A stretch of 64,000 nucleotides of DNA from Isurus oxyrinchus (lineage: Eukaryota), in the NCBI GenBank assembly GCA_026770705.1, contig JANJGN010000007.1, positions 96,658,001-96,722,000 on the forward strand, given 5' to 3'. Both the position numbers and the translations under genes were made by a program. Positions 9,871-59,995 of this stretch are shown piece after piece (position 1 is the stretch's first letter; each line of letters begins with the position of its first letter). The notes below the pieces were generated by a model, which was not told the origin of the DNA, ran no database searches, and saw nothing but the letters and a program-made list of their open reading frames with translations.

Positions 9871-9985
9871 TCAATAAACCGTGCTTTCAAAATCATGACC
9901 TTCATATTCCCCTGAAGCTCTCTCGCCGCCAGGTTCTAACTTTCCACTGTGAACGCCGTTTTTTCTCGTCTCTTCGCCTCGACAC
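9871..9985 (-). CDS. Gene A candidate cytoplasmic exon (RCRGEETRKNGVHSGKLEPGGERASGEYEGHDFESTVY*)
   Basis: Acceptor atatttgaacag|G matches the phase-2 TM donor; hydrophilic, two tyrosines; the 6.6-kb intron is mostly LINE insertions. Confidence 0.5.
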
Positions 9986-12900
9986 CTGTTCAAATATAAT
10001 TCAAAAATCGGGAGAATCCGTCCCAAATGCCTTGTTTGGAAACCTTTAACAATTGTTTGACAGTAACCCAATTCCTTAGTTAATGTGGCAGCAAGTTCAT
10101 TGACAAAGTGGACGTAAGTGCTCAGGGGATCATAAGAAATAGGAGCAGGAGTGGTCAGTCGGCCCATTGAGCTTGTTCCGCTATTCAGTAAGATCATAGC
10201 TAATTTGATTGGGTCCTTAACTCGACTTTCCTGACCGCCACTTCCACCACTTCCATCTCCCCATCACAACTCTTGACTTCCTTGTGTATCAAAAACCTAT
10301 GCCACTCAACTTTGAATATACTCGATGATCCAGCCTCTACTGCTTTCGGGGAAGAGAATTCCTAGGCTCAACGACCCTCTAGGAGAAAAGATCCCTCCTC
10401 TGTCTGTTATAATTATTTTGATACTAAATTATTATTGAATTTTTATGTTATTTTTAAATCATGGTCTCTAGATTCTGATTACTGTAGCCACAGTTCAGTT
10501 TACTATAAATTCAGCATTCTTTATTTCAGCCTTGGCAACGGAGGACCGCCGACTGAGTGAAGACTTGCAGTTTGGTGAGAGGGGAGTCCGGTGAAGGGAG
10601 AGAACGAGTTTGTTTCATCTTTCTATCTTTCTCATTCCATAGAAATTGCTCCTACAGGGGAATGAGCTAGCTATTTGGTGAATATTTGGTAAGTTGGTAA
10701 GTTCTATTCTATCCTTAAGGTTTAAAATAGTACATAATTTGGTGGTAAATTTAATAAAATATATAAGGAAGCAACTTAAGTAAGTGATTAGTATAATTAA
10801 GTAATTGATTAAGACACATTAAGGATGGCAGGGCATGTGATGTGTCAAGACTGCAGCATGTGGGTGCTCCTGGATAACATTGTGATCCAGGACAAACAAG
10901 TCATCAGTTAATGTTTACAGCTCAAGGAACTTCGGCTCAGAGTCATTGAGTTTGAGGCTGAGCTACAGACTCTGTGATACATCAGAGCTGGAGACAGTTA
11001 CCTGTATGTTTTATACCAGGAGGTAGTCACACCACATAGATAGGGTATTCTGATTTTGTCCATGGTCAGGGACAGGAGGGTGTGACTACGAGTGAGGCAG
11101 ATGAGGCGACACAGAGGGCAGGAGTATGAGCCTGTGCAATTGTCCAACAGGTTTGAGGTTCTCCCACCTTGTTTGAAGGAGTGTGAGGGCTGCAGGGTGG
11201 GTGAGTGAACTGACCATGGCACCATGGTACAGGAAGCCAGCCAAGTTGGGAGGAGCAAAAAGGAATGGACTGGTAGTAGGGGACAGAACAGTATGGGGGA
11301 TTGACACTGTTCTCTGTAGCAAAGAGGGAGAGCCCAGATGGCTGTGTTGCCTGTCCAGTGCCAGGGTTGGGGCATCCACTCAGGGCTGGAGAGGAACTTG
11401 CAGTGGGAGGGCTAGAATCTAGAGGTTGTGGTCCTTATAGGTAGCAACGACATAGGCAGGATGAGGAGGGAGGCTCTACATAGCCAGTATGAGGAGCTCA
11501 GCACCAAATTAAGAAGCAGAACCTCAAAGGTAATTTCTGGATTATTACCTGGGCCACATGCAAATTGACATAGGGAAAATAAGATTAGAGAAATAACTAT
11601 GTGGCTCAAAGGCTGGTGTGGGAGAAATGGGTTCCATTTTGTGGAGCACTGGCACTAGTATTGGGGAATGTGGGATCTGTACTGTTGGGATGGCCTACAT
11701 CTGAACCCTGCTGGGGCTGATGTCCTTTTGGAGCCAACCAGACAGCAGTCTATACTTGAACTGGTATTGAGTAATAAGATAGGATTAATTGATGACTTCC
11801 TAGTGAAGGTACCCCTAAGTAGCAGCAATCATAATATGATTGAATTTTACACTCATTTTGAGTGAGAAACAAGGGTGTCCAAGACTATTGCTTTGAACCT
11901 AGACGAGGGCAATTATGAGGGCATGAAATCAGAGCTAGCTAAAGTGAACTGGCAAATGGTTCAGTGGCAGACATTTAAAGACATATTTCAGAATTCACAG
12001 AATATATGTATTCAAATTATAAAAAAAAACATTGCAAGGGGAGGGCCTGCCATCCGTGGCTAACTAAAAAAGTTAAAGACAGTATCAAACTTAAAGAAAA
12101 GGTATATAATTATGCAAAGACAGGTGGCAGGTCAGAAGATTGGGAAGAACACAAATAACAGCCAAGAATGACAAAAAAGATCAATAAGGAAGGAAAAAAT
12201 AGAATATGAGAGAAAGCTAGCTGGTAATATAAAGACAGGTAGTAAGAGTTTCTATATAAATTTAAATAAGAAAATAGTTCACAAAATGAATGTTGGCCCA
12301 AAGAGAGTCTAGGGAATTGATAATGGAAAACAGGGGGATGAATCAAACAGGTATTTTGCTTTGGTCTTCACTAGAGAGGGCACATCCTAGAAATAGTTGT
12401 AAATTAAGAAATGGAAGTGAGGGAGGAATTTGGAAAAATTACAAGCAGCAGGGAAGTGGCATTGAGTGAATTGTTGAGGCTGCAGGCTGACAGATCCCCA
12501 GGTCCGGATAGACTTCACCCTAAAATCTTGAAAGACGTGTCCTGTGAGAAAATTGATGCACTAGCTTTAACTTTGAAAAATTCCCTGGGTTTGGGGCAGG
12601 TTGATTAGATTTAAAAAATAGCAAATGTAACTTCTTTATTGAAAAAGTGAGATAGACTGGAATCAGGAAACTATAGGCTGGTTAGTCTAACATTTGTCAT
12701 AAAGAAAATATTAGAAGCTATTGTTAAAAATATTATAGCAGGGCACTTAGAAAAAAATCAAGTCAGTCATACAGAGTCGACCTGGTTTTGAAAAAGGTAC
12801 ATAATATTTAACCAATTTACTTTCTTTGAAGGAGTCACATGTGCTGTGTATAAAGGGGAACTGGTGGATGTACAAAACTTGGATTTCCAGAAGGCATTTG

Positions 12901-15900
12901 ATAACATGCTACATCAAAGGTTATTGCAGAAAATTAAACCTCATGGTATAGGGGGTAACATATTGGCATGTATAGAAGATTGGTTAGATAACAGGAAGCA
13001 GAGGGTTGGCATAAATTGTTTTTTTTTCTGTCTGGCAGGATGTGATGAATGGTGTACCTCTGGGATCTACCTTTCACAATTTATATAAATGACTTAGATG
13101 AAGGGACCAAAGTAATTATGGCTAAATTTGACACAAACATAGGCAGGAAAGTAAATTGTGAAGAGAATGCAAGGAGGCTACAAAGTGACATTGATAGGTT
13201 AAGTTAGTGGGCAAAGACCTGGCAAATGGAGTATGATGTGGACAAATGTGAAATCATTCCTTTTGGCAGGAAGAATAAAAAGGAAGCTTATTATCTAAAT
13301 GGTGAGATATTGCAGAGCTCTGAGATTCAGAAGGATCTGGGTGTCTTAGTGCATGAATCAAAATTGGTTGGCATGCAGGTACAGCAGATAATTAGGAATG
13401 CCAATAGAATGTTATCATTTATTGTGAGGAAGATTGATTAGAAAAGTAGGGAGGCTATGATTCCATTGTACAAGGCATTGGTAAGACCACATCTGGAGTA
13501 TTGTGTACTGTACTGTTCTCTTTATTTAAAGAAAGATGTAAATGCATTAGAAGCAGTTCAGAGAAGGTTTGCTAGACTAATAGCAGAAATGGGTGGGTTG
13601 TCTTATGAGGAAAGGCTGGACTGGTAGGACTGTATATACTGGAATTTAGAAGAGCATGAGATGACTTATTTGAAACCTTTAAGATCCCGAAATGTTTTGA
13701 CAGGACGGATGTGGAGAGGATATTTCCTCTTGTTGGAGAATCTAGGTCTAGGGAGTCACTGTTTAAAAATAAGGGCTCGCTCATTTAAGACAGAGATGAG
13801 GAGAATGTTTTTTCTCTCAGAGGATTGTGAATCTTTGGAACTCTCTTCTCAAAAGGCAGTGGAAGCAGAGTCTTTGAATATTTTCAAGGTAGAGCTAAAT
13901 AGATTCTTGATTAACAACGGGGTGACAGGTTATCGCGGGTAGGCAGCAATGTGGGGTTGAGATTGTGTTCAGATCAGCCATGACCTTATTTAATGTCAGA
14001 ACAGGCTCAAGGGGACGAGTGGCCAACTCCTGTTCCTAATTTGCACTTTCGTATGTTCATATATATTTCCCGCGAGGGGAAGCATTCTCTCGGTATATGC
14101 TCTGTGAAACCCCGTCAGAATCTTTCACGTTTCAGTAAGATCGCCTCACATTCTTCTAAACTCTAATGAGTATAGGCCCAACCTACTCAAACTTTCCTTA
14201 TAAGATAACTGAATCAGACTAGGGAACGCTTTCTGAACTGCTAATGCAAGTATACCCCCCTCCTACAGTAAGGAGACCAAACTATACACAGTACTCTAGG
14301 TGTCTTGTACGTCTATTACAAGGAAACCTGCAAGCCAGATATGAAGATGATGGATATTACCACTGACTACTGGGAGACAGTCATTGACAGCCATTGACTA
14401 TTGGAAGCTAACTGTTTGGAAGGCCATTGGAAGAGGTGAGAAACAACGAAAACCTCAGCTGTCTGTGAAGAGAGCCCAGAGAAAACAGAGATGGACACAT
14501 CGTGCACCATCCCAGCTCAGAGTTTCTCTGTAGTAAATATGGCAGAGGCATGCTAGACTGTGGCTCCTGAGCCACAGCAGGTGATGCTTAACACAAACTG
14601 ACCACTACAGCACAAACTTTGGTAGTCAATATTGCAGGCTTTCATAAAGTCTAGGCGGGGCCTCAGCAATGCCCTATACAGTTGTAGCAAGGCGACCCTA
14701 CTTTTATACTCCAGTCCCCTTGCAATAAAGGTTAACCTTCCATTTGCCCTCCTCATAACTTGCTATACCTGCATACTATTTAGTCTGTTTCCAAAATCCT
14801 GGAACTCCCTCCCTAACAGCAGTGTGGGTGTACCAAGACCACATGGACTGTAGCGGTTCAGGAAGACAACTCATCACGAACCTCTTAAGGGCAATTAAGG
14901 ATGGGCAATAAATACTGATGTAGCCAGCGATGCCCACATCCCTTAAATGATTAAAACAAAGACAAGAACACCCCGAACCCTTTGTACCACAGCATGCTAC
15001 AGTCTCTCTTCATTTACGTAATATTCTCTTCCTGTTCTTCCTGCCAAAATGGACAATTTTACATTTTCTAACGTTATACTCCTGAAAACCGTTTGTCCAC
15101 TCACTTAACCTATCTATATCCTTTTTAGGCTCTTCCTTACAGTTCCCTGTTCTAGGGGCATAGGAAATAGGAGCAGGAGTGGGCCATTTGTCACCTCAAG
15201 CCAACTCCATCATTCAATAAGGTCAGGGCTTACCTTCAACCTCAGAGCCATTTTTCTGCACAATCCCCATATTCCTTGATATCTTTAATATCTAGAAATC
15301 TACCAATCTCTGTCTTGAAGACACTCTGTAAGCAAACCTCCATAGCCCTCGCAGATGAAGAATTCTAAAGGTTCTCCACTCCCTAATTGAAGAAATTCCT
15401 CCTAATCTCATTACTGAATGGCATACCTCTTGTTCTGAGACTGTGTCCCTTGGTTCTAGATCCTCTTATAGGGGAAGCATCCTTCCTGTATCTACCCTGA
15501 CGAGCCCTGTAAGAATTTTGTAAGTTTCAATAAGATCACTTTCCATTCTTCTAAACTCTGGAGAATACAGGCAGTGTCCTCAATCTCTCCTCAGAGGGCA
15601 ATCCTGTCATCCCTCAAATCAGGCTGATGAACCTTCATTACATTCAGTCTATGGCAAGCATAAACTTCCTTAGGTAAGGAGACCAACACTGTAGACAATA
15701 CTTTGGGTGCAGTCTCACAAACGCTCTGTACAACTGCAGGAACATTTACTCATGCCTCAAATCCTCTTGCAATAAAGGCCAACACCATTTGCCTTCCTAA
15801 TTGCTTGCTGCACCTGCATGTTAACTGTCAGTGACTTACCAAGAAGGACACTAGGTGCATTTTGATATTAACTATACCCCATCTCCCACCATTTAAGAAA

Positions 15901-18900
15901 TACTCTGCATTTTCTTTCCTACCGAAATGAAAAACTTCACATTTTTCCACATTATAATCCACCTGCCATGTTCTTGCCCACCCACCAACAGAGACATCAT
16001 ACTTCCAGTGTTATGTGGTAGATCTCCAAATGGTCCAGGCTTAAGGTAATTGCTCGCAGAACCTGCAAGTTAATATTAGAGTTGTTTTTTTTAGGCAGAA
16101 TGTACAATACACTGACAGATAAGGTGGTGGAAGATAGTTCAATGGTAAATTTCGGAAATACATTGGTCAAATACGTCCGAGGAGAGGGATGGGGCGGGGG
16201 GTGGTGGGGGTGGCGATGGTGCGGTGGCGTGGTGTGTTATATTGGTGGGGGGGTGTACAGTGGAAACACAGGTGTCGAAATAAGTGGATAGTAATTTCAA
16301 AGTGTAGGCAACGAATCAGGGACTTGGGGGAAGAATTATTGTGCTCCATTTGTGCTGTAGACTGTGTGTTTGAGCGATGTCTCATTGAAGAGCTGAGGAC
16401 AAAATGATGAAGATTTTAAGTTCTGCATTAATCGAAAATTTCACTACGAGCCTAATATTACACCCTGGGTATTCTCCTGGTTTCGGGTTTTATTATAATA
16501 TTTACTGGTTAGCAAACGTCAAATCTTCCTTCGGTGTCATATATCAACAAGTGCTGCTGAACATTATAATTTTGTCTTCAAACGCTCTTACCTATGGAGT
16601 TGACCTGGTGCAATGTGGTCGAAGATGATCATCATTAATATAACAATTACCAATATCGCCACAATGGATCGATAAATCAGGAGGACAGGAAGTACAAAGT
16701 GATAATCTGGAAAAGTATAAGGTAATCAATGACTTACAGTTCAAAGCCAGAAACCATCCCACCCTGGTAATATTTTTGACTACTGAACCCGGAATCATAC
16801 TTTATCCGCGTGTTGATTTCCATATCTATTTTGTGTTTTGCATAACAATGCAGTTCAACAAAGCATGGGCAGGCGGTGGTGAAGTGATAATATCACAGGA
16901 CTAGTAATCCAGAGGCCCAGTTTGCTGCTCTGGGAACACGGTTTCACAATTCACAATGGCAGCTGGTAGAATTTCAATTGAATTCAATTAGTAAATCTGG
17001 GATGTAAAGGTAGACTCAGTGATGGTGACCATGACATTTATCATCGATTGTCAGAAAAACGCACGTGTTTCACGAATGTCTGTTAGGTAGGGAAATTTGC
17101 GTCCTTAGCTGGTCTGGCCTACGTGTGACTTCAGACCCATAGCAATGTGGTTGATTCTTAACTGTTCCCTGGGTGGCCTAGCAAGCCGCTCAGTTGAAGG
17201 GCAATTAGGGATGGGCAACAAAAGCCCACATCGCAAGAAAGAATAATTTTTTTTCGCAGTTACAGTACATTATAATAAGAATTTCTCTGATCTAATTGTT
17301 ATTTGTCAATAAGTCATCAACACTTTGCTAAAGGTTGTCTCTGCCCGTTATGTTTAGTGATGCTATAAATAAAATCTTAAGAGCATTGCTTAAGCGTCCC
17401 TAGATATATTGAGAATACTAAACCTTAATAAGCGGCCAGGACTAATGCAGCTAATTAATACTACATACACAATGTGCATATTTGAGAAAAACACGTGCTG
17501 AACCTGACCTGGTAATGCTTCATGACTCCAAATGGTAAAACTCCTAATTATTTTCGCCTAACCTTCTAGCTGTTGATACTGCCATGTTTTGGTGTTACTC
17601 ATTCTCTGATCGGAAATCACTACGACATTTTAGCTTTAGCTGCAGTCGTTTGAAATAAAAAAAAACATTTTCATGTCCTCGATATGTTTTATTGACCAAT
17701 TTGGCAGTGGCCGGAATCATTTGTGATTTGCAAGTCATGGCGTAAGAAGACAGCATATGGTCGCTTGCAGAGGAGGGCTTGTAGATCAGTGAGTAGTGTT
17801 CCTGCCTCTGAATCGGAGGCTCAAGTCCAGGCCCCGCACTTGATAGCCAAGAAATGTGTGTTCTTAGTGCGGCCAAGTAAGTTGACACCCTGGAAATCCT
17901 TCCAACACACCCCAATGGCAAGTGGTAAGAGCAGGAGAGATTCCCGGTCAGCCGTGCGGTGGAAAGAAAGTTGGAGCCTCTACCATCACTATCGATAGGC
18001 CAAAAGTGCACGTTGCCACAGTGACTGGGACTCCTTGAGTGGTCTGCAACACACCGCCACCATAGCCGGTGCTTCGGATGTCACATTAGGAAAGATGTGC
18101 AAATAAATCGGAGAGATATTATTTTCACTCCTTTACTTTGTACAGTGTTAAAGTCAGGATTTGTGGATAAAGGTGAATATCGTACGTGATTGTGGCAGGC
18201 AACTATCATTTTTTTTACATCAGCTAGAATCGAATATCGTATATTGGGAAAATAAAACGATCCCGTTGTGTTCTCTGATAGAATACTGTATTTAATATTA
18301 TTACAGGTCAACTAGAATTGAGAGAGAATCACGAAACACCTTTTGGTGATTATCCTAAATCCACGTTATCTGCTAACCGATTCGCTACAGAGAATGCTCT
18401 TCTATTTCACTGGCCTTTCTCCTTCAACATTTCCAACATCCCATTAGGTCTCATGTTAATTGTCTTACCTGGATAAAATCTAGCACCCGGAATTCCTCGT
18501 ATTGGTTCCCACTGTAACCGAAAAGTCGCAGCTTTGATACAAAGGTAGTAAAAACATGTTTATAACACTATGTCCCTGACATTCTTTATTAAACAATTTG
18601 CCCAAATATGTAGATAAATTTCTAAGTGCACTTTATCCGACGCTGTGCATACGTTCAGAACTAGCTCGCTGATTTTGAACCCTAACTCCCCATTAAAGAA
18701 ACCTATTACCCCTTCCAGTATTTCTCCGCAGTTACTACCGTGTCACTGTGAAATATCTGTGAAGCAGCACTTTCACACAGGTTTTATTTTAAGTTAATTT
18801 GAATGTCTTTTTACTACTTCCGACTCATCAATTGTTACTCCTGCTACTAACATTTACGCGCCCGTTATTAATGCGGAAACAACTTAATCAGAGAGATTTC

Positions 18901-21148
18901 TGCCAAATTTGCTTCAACGTCCACATTTTCATAAAACCTTCTGAAATTTTCATCATTCTATGCACTTGAATGTTGTGTCTGTCTTTAAACTATCATTGGT
19001 AATGTTGCCTCAATTTTGCTTGGATAGTGAATCCACCCCGTCACATTACTTCGACTATGTTATCATTAATCACATTTCTGAACTACTTGCCGATTCGAAG
19101 GTACCATAATATAGTGGAAATTAAATTTAATAATCTCCTTACTTTTTCTTACATTTGTCCAATATCTGCAATGACAACTGAATTGCTGTGATATTAAACG
19201 ATATAACCTTTAAACCATAAACCACGTGTGAAATAATATTACCTACGTTGCCGACAGTGTAGCTGCCATTTGCTGGAACGGAGAGAGAAACGTGATAGAT
19301 TTGACACGTATAAACTGTCCCCTGCTCAACTGGTCGTGCCTCTTCTAAGGAGCTAATAACTTCATACAACCTCTCTGCCTTTTCCCGTTGTTCAATTACG
19401 AATCCTACTGTAATTTCGGTGCCGTTTTTACACCAGATGAGGTTAAAGTCCTTGGGGTGAAATTCAGCCGTTCGACACAGGAGTCTCAAGAAGATAGAAG
19501 TATCCCCGTCGAATGGTATCGAGACAATCTCCACGGGTACGGGGGCAACTAAATTAAACACAAACAAAAAATACATAGAAAGAGAGATAGCAATGCCTTT
19601 ATATATTTACTCTTATCTACGTTTCCCAGTGACAGTGTTCAGGCATCGTAGTTGGACCACAAGTCGTTGTTTATGTGAATGGGCCCCAATTAAATTTGTT
19701 CTTCACTGTATCGAGAAATATTATCCTCAGAGTTTCCCCCTTACAGCATTAACATATTACGTCTGTATTTAACAGAATTCATTTATAACATCAGACATTC
19801 TTTTAACCGTATCAATGGGGTCGAATTGGCATTCAGCGCTTGGGTCGTTTCAATAGTATAGGCCACGTTCTGGTCGAGCAATCACAACATCGTTTTCTTC
19901 GAGGTCAAAGGGATAGAATTTGGACCGCTGTCTGGGCTGCTACACCTGCGTTACGGTGCGTGCCTCGCCAGTCGCTGCAGATGGTGTTTCAACGGTTTTG
20001 TCCCGATCCCAAAAAACCGGAAGCACCCTGCCTCAATGATAGGAGTTGGGATCGTGCTAACCTCTTCTTTCAAAATAAGAGAGTCTTTAAACATGTGCTG
20101 TATTTCAGATACCACAGGAAGGGGAATAGGAATTTGGCTCTTTTTACGATGGAAGTATCCAGCCTGACGTAGAGTGCTCAAATTGAAAGTGTTCTTTAGT
20201 TTCCAGCCTTGAACTAATTTTCCATTATATAAAATACAACAAATAAGAAGAGGCAATAAAGGTCCGTAGACTTTGTTTTCAGAGCTTCTGGTGCTAGAAA
20301 TCTTCTTAATTCTTCAACGCATGTTGTTCTATGTATTGCACTCGAGAGCTGTATTTTTTATGCACTGATTTATTGATTGAAACGCCATTGGGATATTTGC
20401 AGCAACTAAACACTTCACCTTTCTAATTGCAGCACCACTTACCATATACAAGAAGTTGTACAGCAGCTCCTTTTCCAACCGTTCGTCGCTGATAATTGAC
20501 GACACAGTAATATGTCCCGGCATCCGGGACAGTCACATTCAGGAGATGCATGTACGCGCCGCCTCTCCTAACACTGAATATTTTCCGGTCGCCTTTTTGC
20601 AGAAAGCTCTTGTTACCATCTTTCCACCAGTGAGGGAGTACGTTCGAATGATCGAGATGAAAGGGGAAAGGACAACGGAAGGTAACGTTTGTGCCTCGAT
20701 TCGCCTTCTCTTGTACAATATCCGGAGTCACCGCGCCCCAACTGCACACAAAAACTATCAACAAAACGCGGATTAAATCGATCATATACAGAGAAAATAA
20801 TCGGCACCGCCAAAAATGCCATCGTTCGACCAGTCCATTAATACAATCGTAATTCAATGGACTTAGCTATCAGAATGGTCTCCAGTTTACCAATATGTTT
20901 TCCCAGTATCATAAGTAATATTGCCTTCCTTATTCAGTTACTCCCCTTTGTCAAATAAGACATGGCATTAAAACATTTAATCAAATTAAAACTGCAGAAA
21001 CAGTAGTTAAAGCGCATCAACTATAAGATGGCCTCCAAGCATCAGTTCTTGCTCAGAATGGTTAAATAATCAATAACAAATGTAAAAGTCTACCTGGATA
21101 CAAGATTCCCAAGAAGCACATGCCCCAAAGTGATCGAGGCTTTAACAT
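9871..21148 (-). CDS. Gene A: non-rearranging VJ-C1 immunoglobulin-superfamily membrane receptor (antigen-receptor/SIRP/NKp30-like); join(21148-21094,20754-20443,19548-19243,18531-18469,16706-16592,9985-9871), ~321 aa
   Basis: Six exons with GT-AG boundaries and matching phases (1,1,1,1,2) sum to 966 nt in one open frame: leader, V, C1, stalk, TM, tail. The V, C1 and TM exons are strong; the stalk and distal tail exons are less certain. Confidence 0.8.
10130..10400 (-). mobile_element. CR1 3' end (continues at ~14070 after a nested insertion)
   Basis: cataagaaataggagcaggagt...ggcccattgagc terminus typical of the CR1 copies in this window. Confidence 0.75.
10520..14060 (+). mobile_element. 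Near full-length CR1 LINE with an internal deletion near 11725
   Basis: ORF1 esterase (LVVGDRTVWGIDTVLC..LCCLSSARV) jumps to ORF2 (EPTRQQSILELVL); RT LDFQKAFD; 3' UTR. Confidence 0.92.
14070..15980 (-). mobile_element. Nested CR1 fragments interrupted by other LINE pieces (14300-14620 possibly RTE-like; 14790-14960 plus-strand LINE tail)
   Basis: LLQLYRALLRPRL motif; second CR1 3' terminus at ~15160. Confidence 0.75.
16489..16494 (-). terminator. AATAAA polyadenylation signal for the short-tail form of gene A
   Basis: AATAAA on the minus strand ~95 nt after the read-through stop at 16588. Confidence 0.4.
16592..16706 (-). CDS. Gene A transmembrane exon with intramembrane Arg (DYHFVLPVLLIYRSIVAILVIVILMMIIFDHIAPGQLHR)
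   Basis: Acceptor ttatacttttccag|, phase-1 start, ~25-residue hydrophobic run, donor AG|GTAAGA in phase 2. Read-through of the donor gives AGG TAA (stop 16590-16588). Not in the ORF track in this frame. Confidence 0.85.
16868..17245 (+). mobile_element. tRNA-headed SINE sharing its 5' head and 3' tail with the local LINE family
   Basis: Head ggactagtaatccagaggcccag, body tctggcctacgtgtgacttcagaccc, tail gggcaattagggatgggcaa. Confidence 0.85.
17765..18080 (+). mobile_element. Probable tRNA-derived SINE (different family)
   Basis: tRNA-like head (tagatcagtgagtag...gcctctgaatcggaggctcaagtcc). Confidence 0.45.
18469..18531 (-). CDS. Gene A candidate stalk exon (AATFRLQWEPIRGIPGARFYP), with an alternative acceptor at 18511
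   Basis: Consensus donor CAG|GTAAGA; acceptor ctttgtatcaaag| gives a 63-nt phase 1-1 open exon between C1 and TM. Confidence 0.5.
19243..19548 (-). CDS. Gene A exon 3, C1-set Ig domain
   Basis: LLCRTAEFHPKDFNLIWCKNG...YEVISSL...YTCQIYHVSL (C1 motifs FxP, W, YxCxxxH); acceptor tttaatttag|, donor AG|GTAATA; 306 nt, phase 1-1. Confidence 0.93.
20443..20754 (-). CDS. Gene A exon 2, V-set Ig domain with built-in J-like G strand
   Basis: VTFRC...HWWK...LLNVTVPDAGTYYCVVNYQRRTVGKGAAVQLLVY; acceptor ttgttgatag|, donor G|GTAAGT; 312 nt, phase 1-1. Confidence 0.93.
21094..21148 (-). CDS. Gene A exon 1, signal peptide (MLKPRSLWGMCFLGILYP)
   Basis: ATG at 21148, hydrophobic leader, 55 nt, phase-1 donor CCAG|GTAGAC, 340 bp upstream of the V exon. 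Confidence 0.8.
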
Positions 21149-22104: not shown

Positions 22105-24415
22105 TTTTTTTTAATTCATTCACGGGATGTGGGTTTTGCTGGCTGGGCCAGCATTTATTGCTCATCTCTAGTTGCCTTTGAAAAGGTGGTGGTGATCTGC
22201 CTTCTTGAACCTCTGCAATCCATGTAGTGTAGGTACACCCGCAGTGCTGTTCGGGAGGGAGTTCCAGGATTTTGACTCAGCGACAGTGAAGTAACGGTGA
22301 TATATTTCCAAGTCAGGTTGGTGAGTGACTTGGAGGGGAACTTCTAGGTTGTGGTGTTCCGATCCATCTGCTGCCCTTGTCCTTCTAGATGGTAGTGGTC
22401 GTGGGTTTGGAAGGTGCTGTCGCAAGAGCCTTGGTGAATTCCTGCAGTGCATCTTTTAGATGGTACACACTGCTGCCACTGTAGTGTGTGAAAGGAGTGA
22501 ATGTTTGTTGATGTGGTGCCAGGCAAGCGGGCTTCTTTGTCCTGGATGGTGTCCCACTTCTTCAGTGTTGTGGGAGCTGCACTCATCCAGGCAAGTGGGG
22601 AGTATTCCAGCACACTCCTGACTTCTAGCTTGTAGATGGTGGACATGCTTTGGGGAGTCAGGAGGTGACTTAATGGTGGCAGGATTCCAAGCCTTTGACC
22701 TGCCACAGTATTTATAAGGCTAGCCCAGTTCAGTTTCTGTTCAATGGTAACCCCCAGGATGTTGATAGTGGGGGATTCTGTGATGGTAATGCCATTGAAC
22801 ATCAAGGGTTTGTTTCTTGTTGGAGATGGTCATTGCCTGAAAATTGTGTGTTGCAAATCACTTTCACCTCACCTTGGGAGTTCAGCTCTTTTTTCCATGT
22901 TTGAACTGATGCTGGAATAAGATTAGAAGCTGTAATGAGATTAGAGCAGGTTATTGCTGAGCAAGTGCCGCTTGATAGCATTCTTGATGACCCCTTCCAT
23001 TACTTTACTGATGATTGTGGGTAGATTGATGGAGCAGTAATTGGCAGGGTTGCATTTGTTTTGTCTTTGTGTACAGTGCATACCTGGGCAATTTGCCACA
23101 TAGCTGGGTAGATGCCAAACTTGTAGCTGTACTGGAACAGCTTGGCTAGCGCAAGTCGTCAGTAATATTGCCAGAATATTGTGAGGGCTCATAGCCTTTG
23201 CAATATCCAGTGCCTTCTTCCATTTCTTAATCTCATGTTGAGTGAATGAGATTGTCTGAATATCTGTGGACCTATGGAGGAGGCCGAGATGGATCATCCA
23301 CTTGCCACTTCTGGCTGAAGATTGTAGCAAATGCTCCAGCCTTATCTTTTGCACTGTTGTGCTGGTCTCCTCCATCCTTGAGGATGTGGATCTTTGCAGA
23401 GCCTCCTCCTCCAGTGAGTTGTTTAATTGTCCACGACCATTCACAACTGGATGTGGCAGGGCTGCAGAGCTTAAATTTGATCCATTGATTGTGGGATCGC
23501 TTAGCTCTATCAATCACTTGCTGCTTATGCTGTTTGGCACACAAGTGGTCCTGTGTTATATCTTCACCAGGTTGACACCTCATCTTTAAGCATGCCTGGT
23601 GCTGCTTCTGGCATGCCCTCCTGCACTTTTCATTGGACCAGGATTGATCCCTTGGCTTGACAGCAATGACAGAGGGGAGGATATGCCGGTTTATGAGGTT
23701 ATAGATTGTGTTTGAGCACAATTCTGCTGCTACTGATGTCCCACATCACCTCATGGATGCCCAGTGTTAATTTGCTAGATGTTTTCGAAAACTATCCCAT
23801 TTAGCATGGTGGTAGCGGCATACAGCATGATGGAGCATAGCCCCAATGTGAAGATCTCGTCACAGTGCGATGGTCACACCTATCGATATCATCATGGACT
23901 GATGCATCTGTGGCAGGCAGTTTGGTGAGGATGAGGTGAAGTAGGTTTTTCCCTCTTGCTGGTTCCTTCACCACCTGCTGCAGATCCAGACCTTCAGCAA
24001 TCGGCCAGCTCGGGAGTATGGTGGTGATGCCGAGCCACTCTTTGTGTTGGACATTGAAGCCCCTCACCCAGAGTACATTCTGCAACATTGCCACCCTCTG
24101 TGCTTCCTGCAACTAGTGTTCAAAATGGAGAAGCACTGATTCATCAGCTGAGGGTTGGCGGTACGTGGTTATCAGCAGGTGATCTGCTTACCCATATTTG
24201 ACCTGATGCCATGAGACCTCAGGGCAGGTAGAAATGACGTTGAGGACTCCCAGGGCAACTCCCTCCCCACTGTCTACCGCTGTGCCGCCACCACTGCTGG
24301 GTCTGTCCTGTCAGTGGGACAGAACATACCCAGGGATTGCGATGATGGTGTCTGGGACATTTACTGTAAGATATGATCACGTGAGGATGACTATGTCATG
24401 CTGTTGCTTGACTAT
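22105..24415 (-). mobile_element. CR1-group (L2/Crack-like) LINE, internally deleted
   Basis: VRSVLEYSPLAWMSAAPTTLKK and NPANYCSINLPTIISKVME motifs; 3' tail at 22105. Confidence 0.9.
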
Positions 24416-32504: not shown

Positions 32505-35500
32505 TATATTCTTTCACTGGATGTGGGCGTTGCTGGCTTGCCCATCCAAAAGTGCCCTTGGGAAGGTGGTGGAGACCAACATGTTGAACCGCAGCCGCCC
32601 ATGTGGTGTAGGTACACCCACAGTGCTATCAGGAAGGGAGATCCAGGAATTTGACCCACCAACAGTGAAAGAATGGCCGATATAGTTCAAAATCAGGATG
32701 GCTTGTGGCTTGCAGGGGTTCTTGCAGTTGGTGGTGTTCCCATTCATCTGCTGCCCTTGTCCTTCTAGGTGGTAAAGGTCGTAGGTTTAACAGGTGCTGC
32801 CTAACGTATCTTGGTGAATTCTTGCAGTGCACCTTGTAGATAGTACACATTGCTGCCACTGTGCATTGGTGGTGGAGGGAGCGAATGTTTGTGCCTGGGG
32901 TGCCAATTAAGCAGGATACTTTCCCCTGGATGGTGTTGACCTTTTTGAGTGTTGTGGGAGCTGAACTCATCCGGGCAAGTGGGGAGAGTTCCATCACCCT
33001 TCTGACTTGTGCCTTGTGGATGGTGGACAGACATTGGGAAGTCAGGAGGTGAGTTACTCGCCATTGGATTCTCAGCCTCTGACCTTCCCTTGTATCCACC
33101 GTATTTATATGGCTAGTACAGTTCAGTTTGTGATCAATGGTTGCCCGCAGGGTGTAGATAGTTGGGAGATACAGTGGTGGTTATAGCATTAAATGTCAAG
33201 GGGAAATGGTTTGATTCTCTCCTGTTTGGGATGGTTAATACCAGGCACTTACGTGGCACAAATTTAATTTGCCACCTAACAGCACAAGCCTGAATGTTTT
33301 CCAAGACTTGCTTCATTTCCGCATGGTGTGCTTCATCCGAGGAGTCAGGAAAGGCCCTGGACATTGTGCAATCGTCAGGAAACACCCCCGCTTCTGAACT
33401 TATGGAGAGAATGTAATTGATCAAGCAGCTGAAGATGGTTGGGCCTAGAACACTGCCCTGTGGAACTCCTGTAATGATGCCCTGGAACTGAAATGATTGA
33501 TGTGCACCAACCACAATCATCTTCCTTTGTGCTATACATGACTCCAAGCAGTGAAGAGGTTCCCCCCTGACGCCCTACGACTTCAGTATTTCTAGGGCCG
33601 CCTGATGCCACACTTGGTCAATTGCTTCCTTGATGTCCAGGGCAGTTACTGTCACCTCACCTCCTGATTGTACATTTCGGTCCATGTTTGGGCGAAGGCT
33701 GTCAAGAGGTCAATAGCCGAGAGGTTCCAGAAAAAAAACCAAACTGAGCGTCAGCAGGTTATTTCTGAGGAAGTGCTGATTGATAGCGCAGTCCACGACC
33801 TCCTCAATCACTTTGCTGATGACGATGAGTAGACTGATGGGTGGTAATTGGCTGGTTTGGATTGTCCTGCTGTCTTTCATACAGAGCATACCTGGGCAAT
33901 TTTTCACATTGTTGGGCAGATGTCAATGTTTTAGCGGTACTGGAACTGCTTGGCTTGACGCAGGGCCAGTTCTCTTGTCAGAACCCATGGCTTTTACAGT
34001 ATCCAGTGCCTTCAGCCCTTTCTTGATATCACGTGGAGTGAATCGAATAGGCTGAAGGCTGGCATCTGTGATGATTGGGACCTCTGGAGGAGGCCAAGTT
34101 TCATCATCCGCTTGGCACCTCTGGCTGAAGATGGTTGCAAATACTTCGGTCTAAACTTTTGCACTGATATTCCGGGCTCCCCCACTATTGAAGATTTGTG
34201 GAACCTCCTCCTCCAATTCGTTGTTTAATTGTCCAGCACCACTAACGACTGGATGTGGGAGGACTGCAGAGCTTATATCTGATCTGTTGGTCTGGGATCA
34301 CTTAACTTTGTCTATCTCTTGCTGCTTATGCTGTTTGGCACGCAGGTAGTCCTGTGTTGTAGCTTCAGTAAGTTGACATCTCGTTTTAGGTTTGCCTGGT
34401 GCTGCCTTTGTCATGTCCTTTTGCAATTTTGATTGAACCAAGGTTAATCTGCTGGCTTGCTGTTACTCGAGTTGTGTGGTACAGATTGTGATCATACACA
34501 ATTCTGATGCTGCTAATGGCCCACAGTGCCTCATGGATGGCCATTTTTAAGTGGCCAATTCTGTTCAAAAGCTATGCCACTTAGCACAGTGGGAGTATGA
34601 TGGAGGGCATCCTCAGTGTGCATATTGGACTTTGTCTCCTCAAGGACTGTGTGGCGTTCACTCCTGTCATAACTGTACAGATTCATCTGCGAGTGGTAGA
34701 TTGGAGAAGATGAAGTCTAGTGTGTTTTTTGCTTTTGTTGGCTCCCTCACCACCTGCCACAGGCTGAGTCCAGCAGCTATGTCCTTTAGGACTCGGCCAG
34801 CTTGGTCAGTAGTGGTGGTACCGAGCTACTCTTGGTGATGGTCATTGAAGTCCCCCTCGCAGAGTACATTCTGCACCGTTGCCACACTCAACGCCTCGTC
34901 CAAGCGATGTTCAGCATGAGGAGTACTGATCCATCAGCTGAGGGGCTGAAAGGTGGGGGGATGGGAGGGTGATGTTGGTGCAGTAAGTGGTAATCAGTGG
35001 AAACTTCCTTGCCCATGTTTAGCTTAATGCCATGAGAAAACATGGGGTCTGGAGTCAATGTTGAGGCCTCCCAGGGCTACCCACCCGATTGTATACCACT
35101 GTGCCGCAACTTCTGCTGGTTCTGTCCTGATAGTGTGACGGGACGTACCCAAAGGTGATGATTGTGGTGTCTGATGTTACCTGTAAGGTATGATTTCATG
35201 AGGATGACTATGTCAGATTCTTGTTGACCAGTCTGTGAGACAGCTCTCCAAATTTTGGCACAAGCCCCCAAATGTTAGAAGGATGAATTTTGTAGGAACG
35301 ACAGGCCTGAGTTTGCCTTTGTCATTTCTGGTATCTAGGTCGATGCCGGGTGATCAGTCGAGGCTCTCTTTTTTGCGGCATTTTAGTGGTTGCATACAAC
35401 TGAGTGGTTTGCTAATCCATTTCAGAGGGCATTTAAGAGTCAACCGCGTTGCTGTGGGTCTGGAGTTGCATGTAGACTAAGCCAGATAGTCCAGGCAGAT

Positions 35501-45885: not shown

Positions 45886-46717
45886 ATTACGCAATACGCT
45901 GGGTGGTAATGCGTCTCATTGTGTCTCTATCTGCTCTTTGGTAGAACCACCCATTTCGTTCCGCTTTCCAGCACTTTCCCCATCGCTCTTTAAATCGTTC
46001 ACTTCAAACTTATTTTTAAAGTCATATATGAAACAGCTTCGATCACTCTTTCAGACAGAGCATTATATTTCATGACCATTCGGTGCGCTCAACCTTACCT
46101 CTTATCTCGCCTGCACTTCAATTATCAATTAACTTAGATCAGTATCTGCTAATTACCAGCTCTTCTGTCACTGGATGTCGTTCATTTTTATTTGCTCTAT
46201 CAAGCCACTGCATGATTTTGAACACTTCTAATCACAGATTAACCTACTTGGTTGAAAAGGGAGCAATCCCAGCTCATCTAATCATTGTAAGTAACTGAAC
46301 TCTTCCACTCTGACGCAATTCCAGTAAATCTCTATGTGTCCGCTTAAAGATATAGGAATCCTTCATAACGTGCGATGCCCAGTTTATAAGGAAGACACTG
46401 CAATCAATTGAAAAGAAAATTAAGCGCGGTGTAAAATGGACAGCCGATTGTGTCTGTTTTTGATATAAATGATACAAGTACCCCCTACACCAGCCCCAAC
46501 CATCGTTATATCCGACTAAATGATATCCCACTAGTGAACAAAGCTAAATATAGATCGTTTGAAATGGGATAAACAATTACTGTATTATATCTACAGGGTA
46601 TATTTGGCCAGGAATTAAAGCATAGTGTGCTTTGTATTGATTTAAGTGAGGTGTACCTGCTGACCGGTATTGTATTAATGACGGTTAACTACGTCTCTTG
46701 TCTTGTTGGATCTGTAC

Positions 46718-47023
46718 CTGTGTTAGAATATGTAATAACATGCGTGACAAGTAATGGAGTTCCGAATGTGTTATGAGACGCCAGGCAGCTGTAAATACTT
46801 CCACTCTGGGCAGGCTGTGTCTCTTCCAAAACGCTGCGAGCTTCGTGCAATCCGTCTGAGTTCCGCTGCTTAATGACATATATCCCGGTTAGAATTTCGA
46901 TGCCATCTTTATTCTTGTCGAATGCAATAATCTCGGGGTAAAATACAGATGGTTCACATACAAGAGACAATGGTGAATCCCTTGGAGGTTCTCCACAGAG
47001 AAGTTGTACTGGCCTTGGAGGTA
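46718..47023 (-). pseudogene. Gene B C1-set exon (open frame, core Trp lost)
   Basis: VPPRPVQLL...LSLVCEPSVFYPEIIAFDKNKDGIEILTG...SVLEETQPAQSGSIYSCLASHNT; colinear with gene A C1; 306 nt, phase 1-1. Confidence 0.9.
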
Positions 47024-47905
47024 CTGTAAAACACAACATAGAACGGGGGAGATGGGGTGGAGAAAGGAAAGATACTGTGATAAATCACATCAGAGCTTAA
47101 CTGTTTTAATAGTTTACGAACGATTATGATTCATTGATTGGGATTACTTGTAGCGTTTTCCCTACAAATGTGGATATCATCGCATTCCTGCGAATCCTAA
47201 CGAATCTAAGCAAATAAAATCGAGCACCATATGTGGAGGGGAACATAAGAATAGGAGAAGTGACAAATTCAAAGTTGCAACTCGCCATCGATGTTTGCAG
47301 CAAACCCACCTGTAATATATAAGTGAGAATTTGAACTTTTTGTACCTTCAGGTGACCAAATATTGAATTGCCAGCTTTATTTGCTGCCTGTTCGCTGGAC
47401 AGATATATTCCTGCAGCCCCGATTTGAAAAAGTGAAGAATGAGTTTCTAACAGTGATAAGAGATGTTGCCATGATTTCCGTTGATAATGTCACGGCCATT
47501 TTTGCAGCCCCTGTAAACTCAAAGCCTTGTTCCTCTGTATACAAATGCTGCTAGGCAATGCTGACAAGCAATTCTACCATTTTGTGTTTGTTGAATGTTC
47601 CCAACATCCCGGACCACTTTGCTTTTGTTCTTGCGTTTTACCCTATCACGCAATTGAACACGCAGCTGAAATGTGACGTACTTTCCATAGTTAATATCTT
47701 ACATCTTCCAATGCTCCGTTGGGTATAATGATTTGATCTAATAATTGCAATTAATTCCTGTCGTTGAATATGACTTTATCAGAAATTCATAATACATTCT
47801 GTGCTATCTTGATACTCACCCCTAACAGTTAAGTTAGATCCAAAACAAAAACAGAATTACCTGGAAAAACTCAGTAGGTCTGGCAGCATCGGCGGAGGAG
47901 AAAAG

Positions 47906-47944
47906 AGTTGACGTTTCGAGTCCTCATGACCCTTCGACAGAACT
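47906..47944 (-). ncRNA. Minimal type-I hammerhead ribozyme, second copy
   Basis: Exact reverse complement of 48548-48586. Confidence 0.7.
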
Positions 47945-47994
47945 TGATTTCGAGTCCAGGAAAGAGTTGAAATATAAGCTGGTTTAAGGTGTGT

Positions 47995-48030
<36 letters not shown>

Positions 48031-48547
48031 AGGAGAGAGAGAGAGAGACAGAGGTGCTTGTGTAGACAAACAAGCAGTGATAGAAGCAGATCATCAAAAG
48101 ATGTCAGTAACAATGGTACAAAAGAACACATAGGTGTTAAAGTTAAAGTTGGTGATATTATCTAAACGAATGTGCTAATTAAGAATGGATGGTAGGGCAC
48201 TCAAGGTACAGCTCTAGTGGGGGTGGGGGGAGCATAAAGGATTTTAAAATATTTAAAAATAATGGAAATAGGTGGGAAAAGAAAAATCTATAAAATTTAT
48301 AGGGAAAAAAAAAAAGGGGGAAAAAAGGGGGAAACAGAAAGGGGGTGGGGATGGGGGGAGGGAGCTCACGACCTAAAGTTATTGAATTCAATATTCAGAC
48401 CAGAAGGCTGTAAGGTGCCTAGTCGGAAGATGAGGTGTTGTTCCTCCAGTTTGCGTTGGGCTTCACTGGAACTCCTTCCCCCCCCCCCCCCCCCCCCACA
48501 CACCTTAAACCAGCTTATATTTCAACTCTTTCCTGGACTCGAAATCA

Positions 48548-48586
48548 AGTTCTGTCGAAGGGTCATGAGGACTCGAAACGTCAACT
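48548..48586 (+). ncRNA. Minimal type-I hammerhead ribozyme (variant core CUGUCGA)
   Basis: AGTT-CTGTCGA-A-GGGTC-ATGAG-GACTC-GAAACGTC-AACT: stem I AGTT/AACT, stem II GGGTC/GACTC, palindromic ACGT stem III. Confidence 0.7.
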
Positions 48587-49675
48587 CTTTTCTCCTCCGC
48601 CGATGCTGCCAGACCTACTGAGTTTTTCCAGGTAATTCTGTTTTTGTTTTAGATTTCCAGCATCCGCAGTTTTCTTTGTTTTCAACTCTAAGTTAGATCC
48701 AACCGTGCTTCCTTTTGTGTATTCATGTTCTTGCACAGCGCAGTAATGTATCCCTGCGACCTAGAAACGTACATTGGTGATCTGAAGAAAAGCCGCCGAA
48801 TTTACTTTTGAAGCCAGCAACCTTTCGGTAGTTGGTCGCTGTACTCAGGTATTTGCGATTATCTTTTCCACCAATTGATACTCACTTCCGAGCCGGCTCC
48901 AGTGAAGTGCATTGAACAATGAAAAGTGACGCTTGTACCTTGGACTGCGCTCAGACTTTCTGGAAGTTGAATCACTCCGATTGGATTATCTGTCGAAACA
49001 GTAAAGTATAAAATTTGTTAGATGTCATCCCGGAGTGGGACGAACGGTGGGAGTTAACAAAGATTTAATGTACCCATATTATATACATGTATGTCTATGC
49101 TTGTGCACAGGAACTCATTCAAGTTGATGTTGAGAGAGACCAGGCATAAAATAACTAAACAGGTAAACGATCGCAAAGGTTGAGAAATACAGACCCAGCT
49201 TATTCTTCAACATTGCGATCAGTCATAGGCCTTTTGTTGATTATAACGAACGTTCCACGATTTGCAAAACAGATGTTTCCTTTTGTTTAATATGGTAGAG
49301 GTCGCAGTGACGTTGTTATCCGGGCATCGCGCTTTCAGAACGGTGTTCCTATTATTTGGTCATATCCACAGAACTTTCCACACTGAACAATTTATGATAA
49401 TTATCCGCCGATCCAGAAGACATAACCCGATTTGCTGTAGAAATTGACGGAACTTTAAATTTAGAAGTAGTTTGCAAGTGTTGAACTAATAATAACAATG
49501 GTCCAAATTCTTCAGGGCATCAAATTTACTTGTCCTTTCGTAAACTCCACATGTTCCCTTTCAGATGGCGCAACGCTGAAGAAGACGAGTAATTAGAGGA
49601 AATGTACATCGAGAAGCTGTTGTAGACTCGGGGGGACAACAGTCAGCAAATTAAACCCCGACGTTACTTCGTTAC

Positions 49676-59100: not shown

Positions 59101-59620
59101 GATCACCATTATGCTCATTGCTACCTTGCTCTTTTGCCTTGTCTTATTTAATTAGCTATCACATCTTTCCTTACTTGATCCCCTGCCCCTATTATTTAGT
59201 TGATGGGGTTCTCACCGTCCTACTTTTATGACTCGCCAGAATCCTGATCCCAGTATGATTCAAGTGAAGGCCTTCCCAATGGTACAGCTCCCACATTCCC
59301 CAGTGCCTCACGAATCAAAACCCATTTCTCCCACATCAATCTTTGAGCCATGCATTCAGCTCTTTAATTTGGTTTATCCTACGCCAAACTGATCGTTGCT
59401 CAGGTAATAATCCAGTGATTATCACATTTGAGGCTATTTATTAATTCAGCCCCGAGCTGCTCATGCTCCCTCAGCAGAATTTCTTTCCTGGTTCCAGTTC
59501 ATTGGTACTTACGTAGGCAACTGGACGCTTCCCCTCCCACTGCAAGTCCCTTTCCGACATATGCGGGTGTCCCGAACTCTGACAACGGGCAGACAATACA
59601 ACCGATTCGGCTCTCGGTCT
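56140..59620 (-). mobile_element. CR1 LINE (ORF1 esterase end, ORF2, 3' UTR), degraded
   Basis: ACIRNKTDEL..LIAITETWL endonuclease start; SLNSGKVPISWKIAN; 3' terminus ~56145. Confidence 0.88.
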
Positions 59621-59679
59621 CAGCCGCAGATAACAATGTCCATCCTACTGACTATAATGTCCCCTACCACCATTACATT

Positions 59680-59995
59680 CCTATCACTCAATCATCTCAG
59701 TTCCGGGACATCTCTGCAGGAGTTACTCAGGGGAATGTCCTAGGGCCAACCATCTCCAGTTGCTTCATTTATGACCCTCGTGCCATTATAAGAGCAGGAG
59801 TGGGGATGCTCGCTGATAACTGCACAATGTTCAGCACCATTCGTGACTCCTCAGATACTGCAGTGAACGGTTCCCAGATTAAGCAAGACCAGGACGATAT
59901 CCAGGTTGGGGCTGATAAGTGGAAAGTAACATTCGTGCCACACAAGTGCCAGACAATGACCATCTCCAACAAGAGACAATTCAACCATTGCCCCT
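59680..59995 (+). mobile_element. LINE RT fragment
   Basis: DISAGVTQGNVLGPTISSCFI..MLADNCTMF within ORF 59428-60048. Confidence 0.85.

Follow-up and report, generated by a model that had tools for sequence, protein, structure and literature searches.

A probable activating-type member of a cartilaginous-fish family of paired, SIRP-like V(J-like)-C1 receptors in Isurus oxyrinchus

Is a gene whose V domain already carries a J-like strand in the germline, and is followed by a C1-set domain, a relative of the antigen receptors, or a receptor of another kind? The question is raised by a gene on the minus strand of a stretch of Isurus oxyrinchus DNA of 64,000 nucleotides (assembly GCA_026770705.1, contig JANJGN010000007.1, positions 96,658,001 to 96,722,000). 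The whole stretch is called the window here, and positions are counted within it. The debate on the origin of immunoglobulins (Ig) and T-cell receptors (TCR) turns largely on non-rearranging V(J)-C1 genes, few of which have been characterised, namely UrIg, UrIg2, NKp30, the SIRPs and the PRARPs. A sequence-only reading of the window had compared the architecture of the gene to that of TCR and Ig light chains, and had placed it in an elasmobranch family of receptors of the kind discussed as relatives of the pre-RAG antigen receptor. The analysis presented here points elsewhere. The gene is probably an intact, activating-type member of a family of paired receptors of cartilaginous fish, with a SIRP-like V(J-like)-C1-transmembrane (TM) organisation.

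Exon structure, family and orthologues

The gene consists of five exons, which together have 903 nt without an internal stop and span 11.3 kb, as judged by reading the sequence and checking the splice sites. The exons were joined in silico for length, frame and stop counts, and all searches were run exon by exon. All acceptors are AG after a pyrimidine tract, all donors are GT, and the intron phases are 1, 1, 1 and 2. The leader is split, an arrangement typical of antigen-receptor-like genes. In order from the start codon, the exons are:

21148-21094, minus strand: leader exon, first part of the split signal peptide (MLKPRSLWGMCFLGILYP plus 1 nt); ATG at 21148, donor GT at 21093-21092; 18 codons plus 1 nt, phase 1
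20754-20443, minus strand: V exon, 312 nt; end of the signal peptide and a short V/I-type Ig domain with the J-like G strand VGKGAAVQLLVY
19548-19243, minus strand: C1-set Ig exon, 306 nt; phase 1 to phase 1
16706-16592, minus strand: TM exon, 115 nt; DYHFVLPVLLIYRSIVAILVIVILMMIIFDHIAPGQLH-R, with an arginine near the outer end; phase 2 out
9985-9871, minus strand: tail exon, 115 nt including TGA; CRGEETRKNGVHSGKLEPGGERASGEYEGHDFESTVY followed by the stop; acceptor AG at 9987-9986, TGA at 9873-9871

A tblastn comparison of 12 members of a chondrichthyan protein family with the window matched the V, C1, TM and tail exons. By the same method, the leader exon shares 82% identity with the N-terminus of Scyliorhinus torazame P0167 across 17 aa; the V exon is 57–61% identical to P0003, P0167 and P0008; the TM segment, found by a hydrophobicity scan and from the sequence, is 59–61% identical to those of P0003 and P0167; and the tail exon agrees with the C-terminus of P0167 at 67% identity across 39 aa. 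For the TM and tail exons, the only matches are the catshark and bamboo-shark orthologues (59–67% identity). The tail motif CRGEE(T/A)RKN recurs in P0226 and P0227, and P0003 has YRNEETKRN.

The sequence-only reading had listed leader, V, C1, stalk, TM and tail exons in matching phases. Five of these are open, with AG and GT at their borders, and can be retained; the stalk cannot. The candidate for it (18531-18469, minus strand) is in frame between AG and GT, which was all that spoke for it, and it was rejected. None of the 12 family proteins matches it by tblastn, and it is missing from every orthologue model, C1 being spliced straight to the TM exon in all of them. The direct join keeps the frame, and its junction codon G/AT encodes the Asp found in the orthologues: the window reads ...SYTVGNV/DYHFVLPV, beside ...SYTVGNVGCHFVLPV in S. 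torazame P0167, ...SYIVDNVDYHAVPV in Chiloscyllium punctatum P0003 and ...NYTVGNEDYHSVRPV in Heptranchias perlo. In addition, a related genome that is about 2% diverged has a 1-nt deletion at or beside the candidate's acceptor (18532).

When the C1 exon was compared with 1.84 billion representative proteins, 313 matched at E <= 0.001 and 103 below 1e-10, with P0003 at 1e-35. Most of these proteins are 230–370 aa long and have a single C1 domain at about residues 123–224, so that a leader and a V domain must precede it. An 18-member profile of the family found 80 proteins, all of them chondrichthyan, and usually many per species on one chromosome. They come from Callorhinchus, Heptranchias, Heterodontus, Scyliorhinus, Mustelus, Stegostoma, Chiloscyllium, Hemiscyllium, Carcharodon, Mobula, Hypanus, Hemitrygon, Pristis, Amblyraja and Leucoraja. 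Their automatic NCBI names are inconsistent, and include SIRP-alpha-like, SIRP-beta-1-like, NCR3 ligand 1-like (NCR3LG1), tapasin-related-like, Ig lambda-1-like, MHC class II beta-like, CD276 homologue, TCR beta-like and 'uncharacterized'. The protein of the window gene does not occur in the protein collections searched; it has the leader-V-C1-TM plan of the family, and significant similarity to it in both V and C1.

In the C1 tree, a clade with a support of 99 unites the window C1 with its counterparts in C. punctatum P0003 and in S. torazame P0167, the latter 77% identical. In the V tree, P0167 is the sister of the window V, to which it is 66% identical, and both lie in a clade of 18 shark and ray sequences with a support of 100. 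The sequence comparisons thus indicate a clear orthologue of catshark and bamboo-shark genes, shared by two shark orders, and the gene can be assigned, which the sequence-only reading had not been able to do, to the following entries: the catshark XP_038662036 and XP_072373773 ('tapasin-related protein-like'), GCB66622, and the bamboo-shark XP_072403667 ('uncharacterized'). The catshark and bamboo-shark orthologues have the same exon plan, the same arginine in the TM segment (LIYR(S/T)) and the same tail exon (CRGEETRKN...) as the window gene.

It is worth adding that the sequence-only reading had also called the family poorly characterised, and in this it is supported. In searchable full texts, no paper on SIRP-like V-C1 receptors of cartilaginous fish was found, subscription papers on B7H6/NKp30 and on PRARPs lying outside that scope. 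The papers on UrIg2 and on shark MHC (major histocompatibility complex) treat VJ-C1 genes, and not the V(J-like)-C1 family described here (PMC12227049, PMC10751288). The family is already in public annotation and seemingly unstudied, and the gene illustrates it well but is not in itself a discovery.

Soluble forms probably exist, since the Scyliorhinus canicula orthologue has, beside the RefSeq membrane isoform X1, isoforms without the TM exon or with read-through past C1. The soluble forms of S. canicula are P0223, P0224 and P0225 (TM skip with a frame-shifted tail; an alternative short exon; and C1 read-through, GNVGNIST followed by a stop). Past C1, the window sequence likewise reads GNVGNI.... 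A further variant can be read at the TM donor (16590-16592), where retention of the last intron gives AGG TAA, and the protein would stop directly after the TM segment. The Heptranchias orthologue models P0168 and P0169 end at the point equivalent to this read-through.

The V and C1 domains

Pfam recognises the V exon as V-set (1.9e-06, 28.5 bits, cut-off 26), and 55 residues separate its cysteines. For the window V exon alone, the AlphaFold model (predicted confidence, pLDDT, 89.6) contains strands A', B, C, D, E, F and G. It has no strand between C (38-44) and D (57-62), in other words C' and C'' are missing. The nearest folds are the I-set domains of titin and obscurin, the V domain of PD-L1, TREM-1, BTLA and the V domain of shark IgNAR. 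On account of the missing strands and of the I-set domains among its nearest folds, the 'V' is better described as a truncated, I-like V than as TCR/Ig-light-chain-like. PD-L1 V domains are among its matches in both sequence and fold, and NKp30 gave no match in either search. An ESM Atlas search with the V exon returned generic Ig V/I-set clusters only, and a protein search with the V open reading frame, in a length window that leaves out full-length relatives, gave no match.

The G strand that had been read from the sequence (YYC-VVNYQRRTV-GKGAAVQLLV) is indeed present in the V exon. The J-like strand YYCVVNYQRRTVGKGAAVQLLVY lies inside this exon, which closes in a perfect GTAAGT donor, and in the model the G strand is broken at G93-K94-G95, consistent with a J-type bulge. 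The motif of the window gene is degenerate (VGKGAAVQLLV) and has lost its Thr, with GKGAAV as against GKGTGL or GKGAVV in the catshark and bamboo-shark orthologues. Older family members have the canonical J motif GxGTxLxV, and elephant-shark members have GNGTGxxLxV. The cysteines, the Trp and the N-glycosylation sites of the window gene are intact. A scan for heptamers and nonamers resembling a recombination signal sequence (RSS) found none near the V exon, in agreement with the sequence-only reading. The single weak match between 9 and 22 kb, at 17468, is intronic, and seven matches of that weakness occur by chance across the whole window. With the J-like strand within the V exon, a GT donor behind it and no RSS nearby, the gene is therefore germline-joined and non-rearranging, and the exon structure and the RSS scan uphold the earlier description of a non-rearranging V(J-like)-C1-TM gene. 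As far as can be read from its sequence, this is a real and apparently intact receptor gene.

The C1 exon encodes a genuine C1-set domain (Pfam 3e-08, 34.3 bits, cut-off 21). Its best phmmer matches in the PDB are MHC class I alpha3/b2m, MHC class II beta2 and UrIg2, all at about 1e-7 to 1e-8. Scored domain by domain, in a set to which UrIg2 (a PDB chain) did not belong, it reaches 40–168 bits within the family; outside it, at best 34.5 bits with a reptile MHC class II beta and 26–31 bits with SIRP-like proteins of lungfish and coelacanth. The latter are also the first non-chondrichthyan matches of the whole protein, at a depth at which the C1 tree is without resolution. When the family profile was used to search the PDB, the best 60 sequence matches included SIRP-alpha, SIRP-gamma, UrIg2 and Ig chains and did not include B7-H6, in a search dominated by multi-C1 Ig chains with summed scores, which cannot rank families with a single C1. 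From the sequences there would appear to be no decisive link of the family to SIRP, B7-H6, UrIg or the antigen receptors.

For the ectodomain as a whole, the AlphaFold model of P0167 was used, in which most ectodomain blocks have pLDDT > 90. A Foldseek search with the two-domain model gave B7-H6 first (6yjp_E at 5.2e-14, and 3pv7_A; TM-score 0.68–0.69, root mean square deviation 3.7 Å, 23–24% identity), followed by Ig light chains, which have a different elbow angle, and then by SIRP-alpha. In these predicted structures, the match to B7-H6 is one of fold only.

Paired forms, constraint and alternative readings

The TM helix of the window gene, VLLIYRSIVAILVIVILMMIIF, has an arginine near its outer end (LLIYRSIV) and is followed by a tail of 38 aa without an immunoreceptor tyrosine-based inhibitory motif (ITIM). 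In this family, a basic TM residue with a short tail is taken as the mark of the activating-type form. A TM arginine and short tails are also found in P0003, P0167, P0168, P0169, P0171, P0173 and P0226, the arginine being kept in shark orthologues and in ray members. Sister genes have the opposite arrangement: Heterodontus P0170 and P0008 and Stegostoma P0184 and P0192, for example, have an uncharged TM segment and a long tail with repeated LTYAAL...(about 22 aa)...xVYAE units, on ectodomain types nearly identical to those of the arginine-TM genes. These ITIM-type members lie in the V clade of the window gene, where Heptranchias P0169 (arginine TM) is sister to Heterodontus P0170 (ITIM) with a support of 96. 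The inhibitory tails are collinear with the four-tyrosine tail of a lungfish SIRP-alpha-like protein (z = 5.5–11.7; none of 500 shuffles reaches the score), and this alignment supports the label 'SIRP-like'. The spacing of tandem ITIMs may also arise convergently, since the tandem SH2 domains of SHP phosphatases dictate it.

On the basis of these observations, we suggest the following mode of action. The V-C1 ectodomain would extend from the membrane, like those of B7-H6 and SIRP-alpha, and bind its ligand through the V domain. The position of the TM arginine suggests that it would pair with the aspartate of an adaptor of FcR-gamma/CD3-zeta or DAP12 type, carrying an immunoreceptor tyrosine-based activation motif (ITAM), and through such an adaptor the binding of ligand would activate the cell. 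Relatives with an ITIM tail would work against this activation by recruiting SHP-type phosphatases.

One tandem paralogue is found in the window, 25 kb upstream and on the same strand. Two stops, with a frameshift between them, interrupt its V exon; its C1 is open (Pfam C1-set 0.00082) and is sister to that of Mustelus asterias P0148 (SIRP-alpha-like), with 59% identity and a support of 98. The remainder of the window is mostly retroelement debris, with fragments of reverse transcriptase of long interspersed nuclear element (LINE) type also at 22300-23700, 32600-33550 and 59400-60050 (Pfam RVT_1 from 1.7e-07 to 0.003). The features are:

46698..49011, minus strand: tandem paralogue of the family, at least partly decayed; V 49011-48689, C1 47042-46698 (tblastn and three-frame reading)
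11400..14000, plus strand: LINE-type reverse-transcriptase remnants in the 6.6-kb last intron; open reading frames 12846-13088 and neighbours, Pfam RVT_1 0.0031

Several observations weigh against an intact and active gene, and most of them come from the related genome mentioned above. The sequencing runs that carry the stretch are genomic DNA of this relative only, with no RNA run among them. Over 3.4 kb there are 68 mismatches between the relative and the window, and the exons, at 2.3%, are no less diverged than the introns, at about 2.0%. In the C1 exon, which is where substitutions were scored by their effect on the codon, all seven are nonsynonymous (E6K, S17P, V47A, V50A, R54Q, R59G and I64F). 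Strong purifying selection on C1 is excluded over this short span, and either diversifying selection or relaxed constraint fits. No polyadenylation signal was found within 1 kb of the stop codon. Finally, no contig of the relative covers the TM exon and its flanks (16300-16812) in four runs; such a hole proves nothing, and loss or strong divergence is possible. Two side observations may be added. A comparison of the C1-exon differences with S. torazame suggests changes on both lineages. In the C1-TM intron, 16813-17325 and 17839-18009 are very high-copy repeats (summed contig depth 1e4–3e5, against about 20 for unique sequence, in whole-genome runs of the relative), and for this reason the relative's assembly breaks just below the C1 exon.

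The seven nonsynonymous changes, the equal divergence of exons and introns and the absence of an RNA run, together with the visible decay of the neighbouring paralogue, speak for a young pseudogene in a birth-and-death cluster, a copy that is decaying or no longer expressed and has kept its frame open by chance. Such a copy is nevertheless unlikely here: it would have to have kept five open exons and canonical splice sites across 11.3 kb, as well as its cysteines, Trp and N-glycosylation sites, and all 11 indels relative to the related genome fall in introns or flanks, none in exons. The arginine TM and the specific tail exon, moreover, are kept in catsharks and the bamboo shark, in two orders. 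Judged from the sequence, an expressed, functional gene is much more likely. Another reading is that the product is a ligand and not itself a receptor, a B7 protein of B7-H6 (NCR3LG1) type displayed for receptors of the NKp30 family. The Foldseek ranking, the PD-L1 V domains among the matches of the V exon and the name 'NCR3 ligand 1-like' given by NCBI to several family members all agree with this. We consider it improbable, in view of the paired-receptor signature of conserved TM arginine and tandem-ITIM sister genes, the inhibitory tails that align with that of a SIRP-alpha-like protein, and the family profile, which has SIRP-alpha, SIRP-gamma, UrIg2 and Ig chains among its best 60 PDB matches and B7-H6 outside them. 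The canonical GxGTxLxV motif of older family members argues in the same direction; to our knowledge, the V domain of B7-H6 lacks a GxG motif.

A further reading would make the gene a relic of the antigen-receptor precursor that predates RAG, with a specific kinship to UrIg/UrIg2, Ig light chains or TCR. Its attraction lies in the germline J-like strand followed by C1, in the split leader and phase-1 introns, and in UrIg2 (9dmx), which is one of the best sequence matches in the PDB both for the C1 exon and for the family profiles. When whole chains are scored, however, UrIg2 and Ig heavy chains add up the contributions of several C1 domains, and the single-domain C1 scores (UrIg2 being outside that set) show no favourite, lying at about 31–35 bits for a reptile MHC class II beta and lungfish SIRP-like proteins alike. 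UrIg and UrIg2 also differ in carrying 3 to 11 C domains and in lying in the MHC or antigen-receptor complex (PMC12227049). The V of the window gene is a truncated, I-like domain, and the organisation into arginine-TM and ITIM-tailed forms is typical of innate receptors. A relic of this kind is thus very unlikely, and the arginine TM and the ITIM-tailed sister genes mark out instead a paired receptor of innate type.

An activating-type member of a paired receptor family remains the preferred reading, and it leads to the question of how the family is related to the SIRPs. The sequence-only reading would have given up its claim of novelty on clear orthology to SIRP or B7-H6. Resemblance there is, with many members automatically named SIRP-like or NCR3LG1-like; clear orthology has not emerged. 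That the family is the cartilaginous-fish counterpart (co-orthologue) of the SIRPs is a tentative proposal, which we consider possible but rather doubtful. If it were true, paired V(J)-C1 receptors with a four-tyrosine tail of SIRP-alpha type would have been present in the ancestor of jawed vertebrates, in a light-chain-like form with one C1. The family would then join UrIg/UrIg2 and NKp30 as the third non-rearranging VJ-C1 lineage with a bearing on how antigen receptors were assembled, and the window gene an old activating partner, stably kept in two shark orders. More generally, sharks keep a large, fast-evolving family of innate receptors that have the shape of a light chain and come in activating and inhibitory versions. 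The labels 'tapasin-related', 'MHC class II beta' and 'Ig lambda' are misleading, and a curated name together with a proper phylogeny would set them right. The single gene adds little on its own, as the family is already publicly annotated.

Comparison with known systems

The SIRPs (PDB 2wng, 4i2x) resemble the family in their extended ectodomain, in which an N-terminal V domain, its J-like strand already present in the germline, precedes one or more C1-set domains. Like the family, they are also paired, with an inhibitory four-tyrosine tail in one form and a basic TM residue and short tail in the other. The germline J-like G strand is seen in the window gene as VGKGAAVQLLV and in elephant-shark members as GNGTGxxLxV, and SIRP-alpha and SIRP-gamma are among the best PDB matches of the family. 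The differences are also clear. SIRPs have two C1 domains, and the window gene, with one, does not have their V + C1 + C1 plan; the V of the family is short and without the C' and C'' strands; and the window C1 is no closer to the SIRP C1 of lungfish and coelacanth (26–31 bits) than to reptile MHC class II beta (34.5 bits). The basic residue of SIRP-beta is a lysine in the middle of the membrane, and that of the family is an arginine near the outer end.

B7-H6/NCR3LG1 (PDB 3pv7, 6yjp) shares the V-C1-TM plan and is the best rigid two-domain structural match. It differs in being a ligand, and in sequence it is no nearer to the family than other V-C1 proteins are, falling outside the best 60. 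We know of no charged TM residue in B7-H6 and of no paired ITIM relatives.

NKp30 has no C1 domain. Shark NKp30/NCR3 resembles the family in its non-rearranging V of VJ type and in the TM arginine of the activating forms, and the elephant-shark protein P0217, automatically named NCR3-like, is a V-only splice form of a family member. The window gene is not a single VJ domain without a C domain, as its C1 exon is present and conserved. NKp30 is MHC-linked in sharks (PMC12227049).

Like the family, UrIg and UrIg2 (PDB 9dmx) occur in elasmobranchs and do not rearrange; their VJ is encoded by a single exon, the leader is split, and they have domains of C1 type. They differ in being single genes, located in the MHC or the antigen-receptor complex, whose products contain 3 to 11 C domains and dimerise through disulfide bonds (PMC12227049). 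The family, by contrast, has one C1, is multigenic, and is paired into activating and inhibitory forms, and the window gene accordingly lacks the UrIg architecture. It differs equally from the rearranging Ig light-chain and TCR genes, in which V and J are separate and flanked by RSS, whereas here the J-like strand lies inside the V exon.

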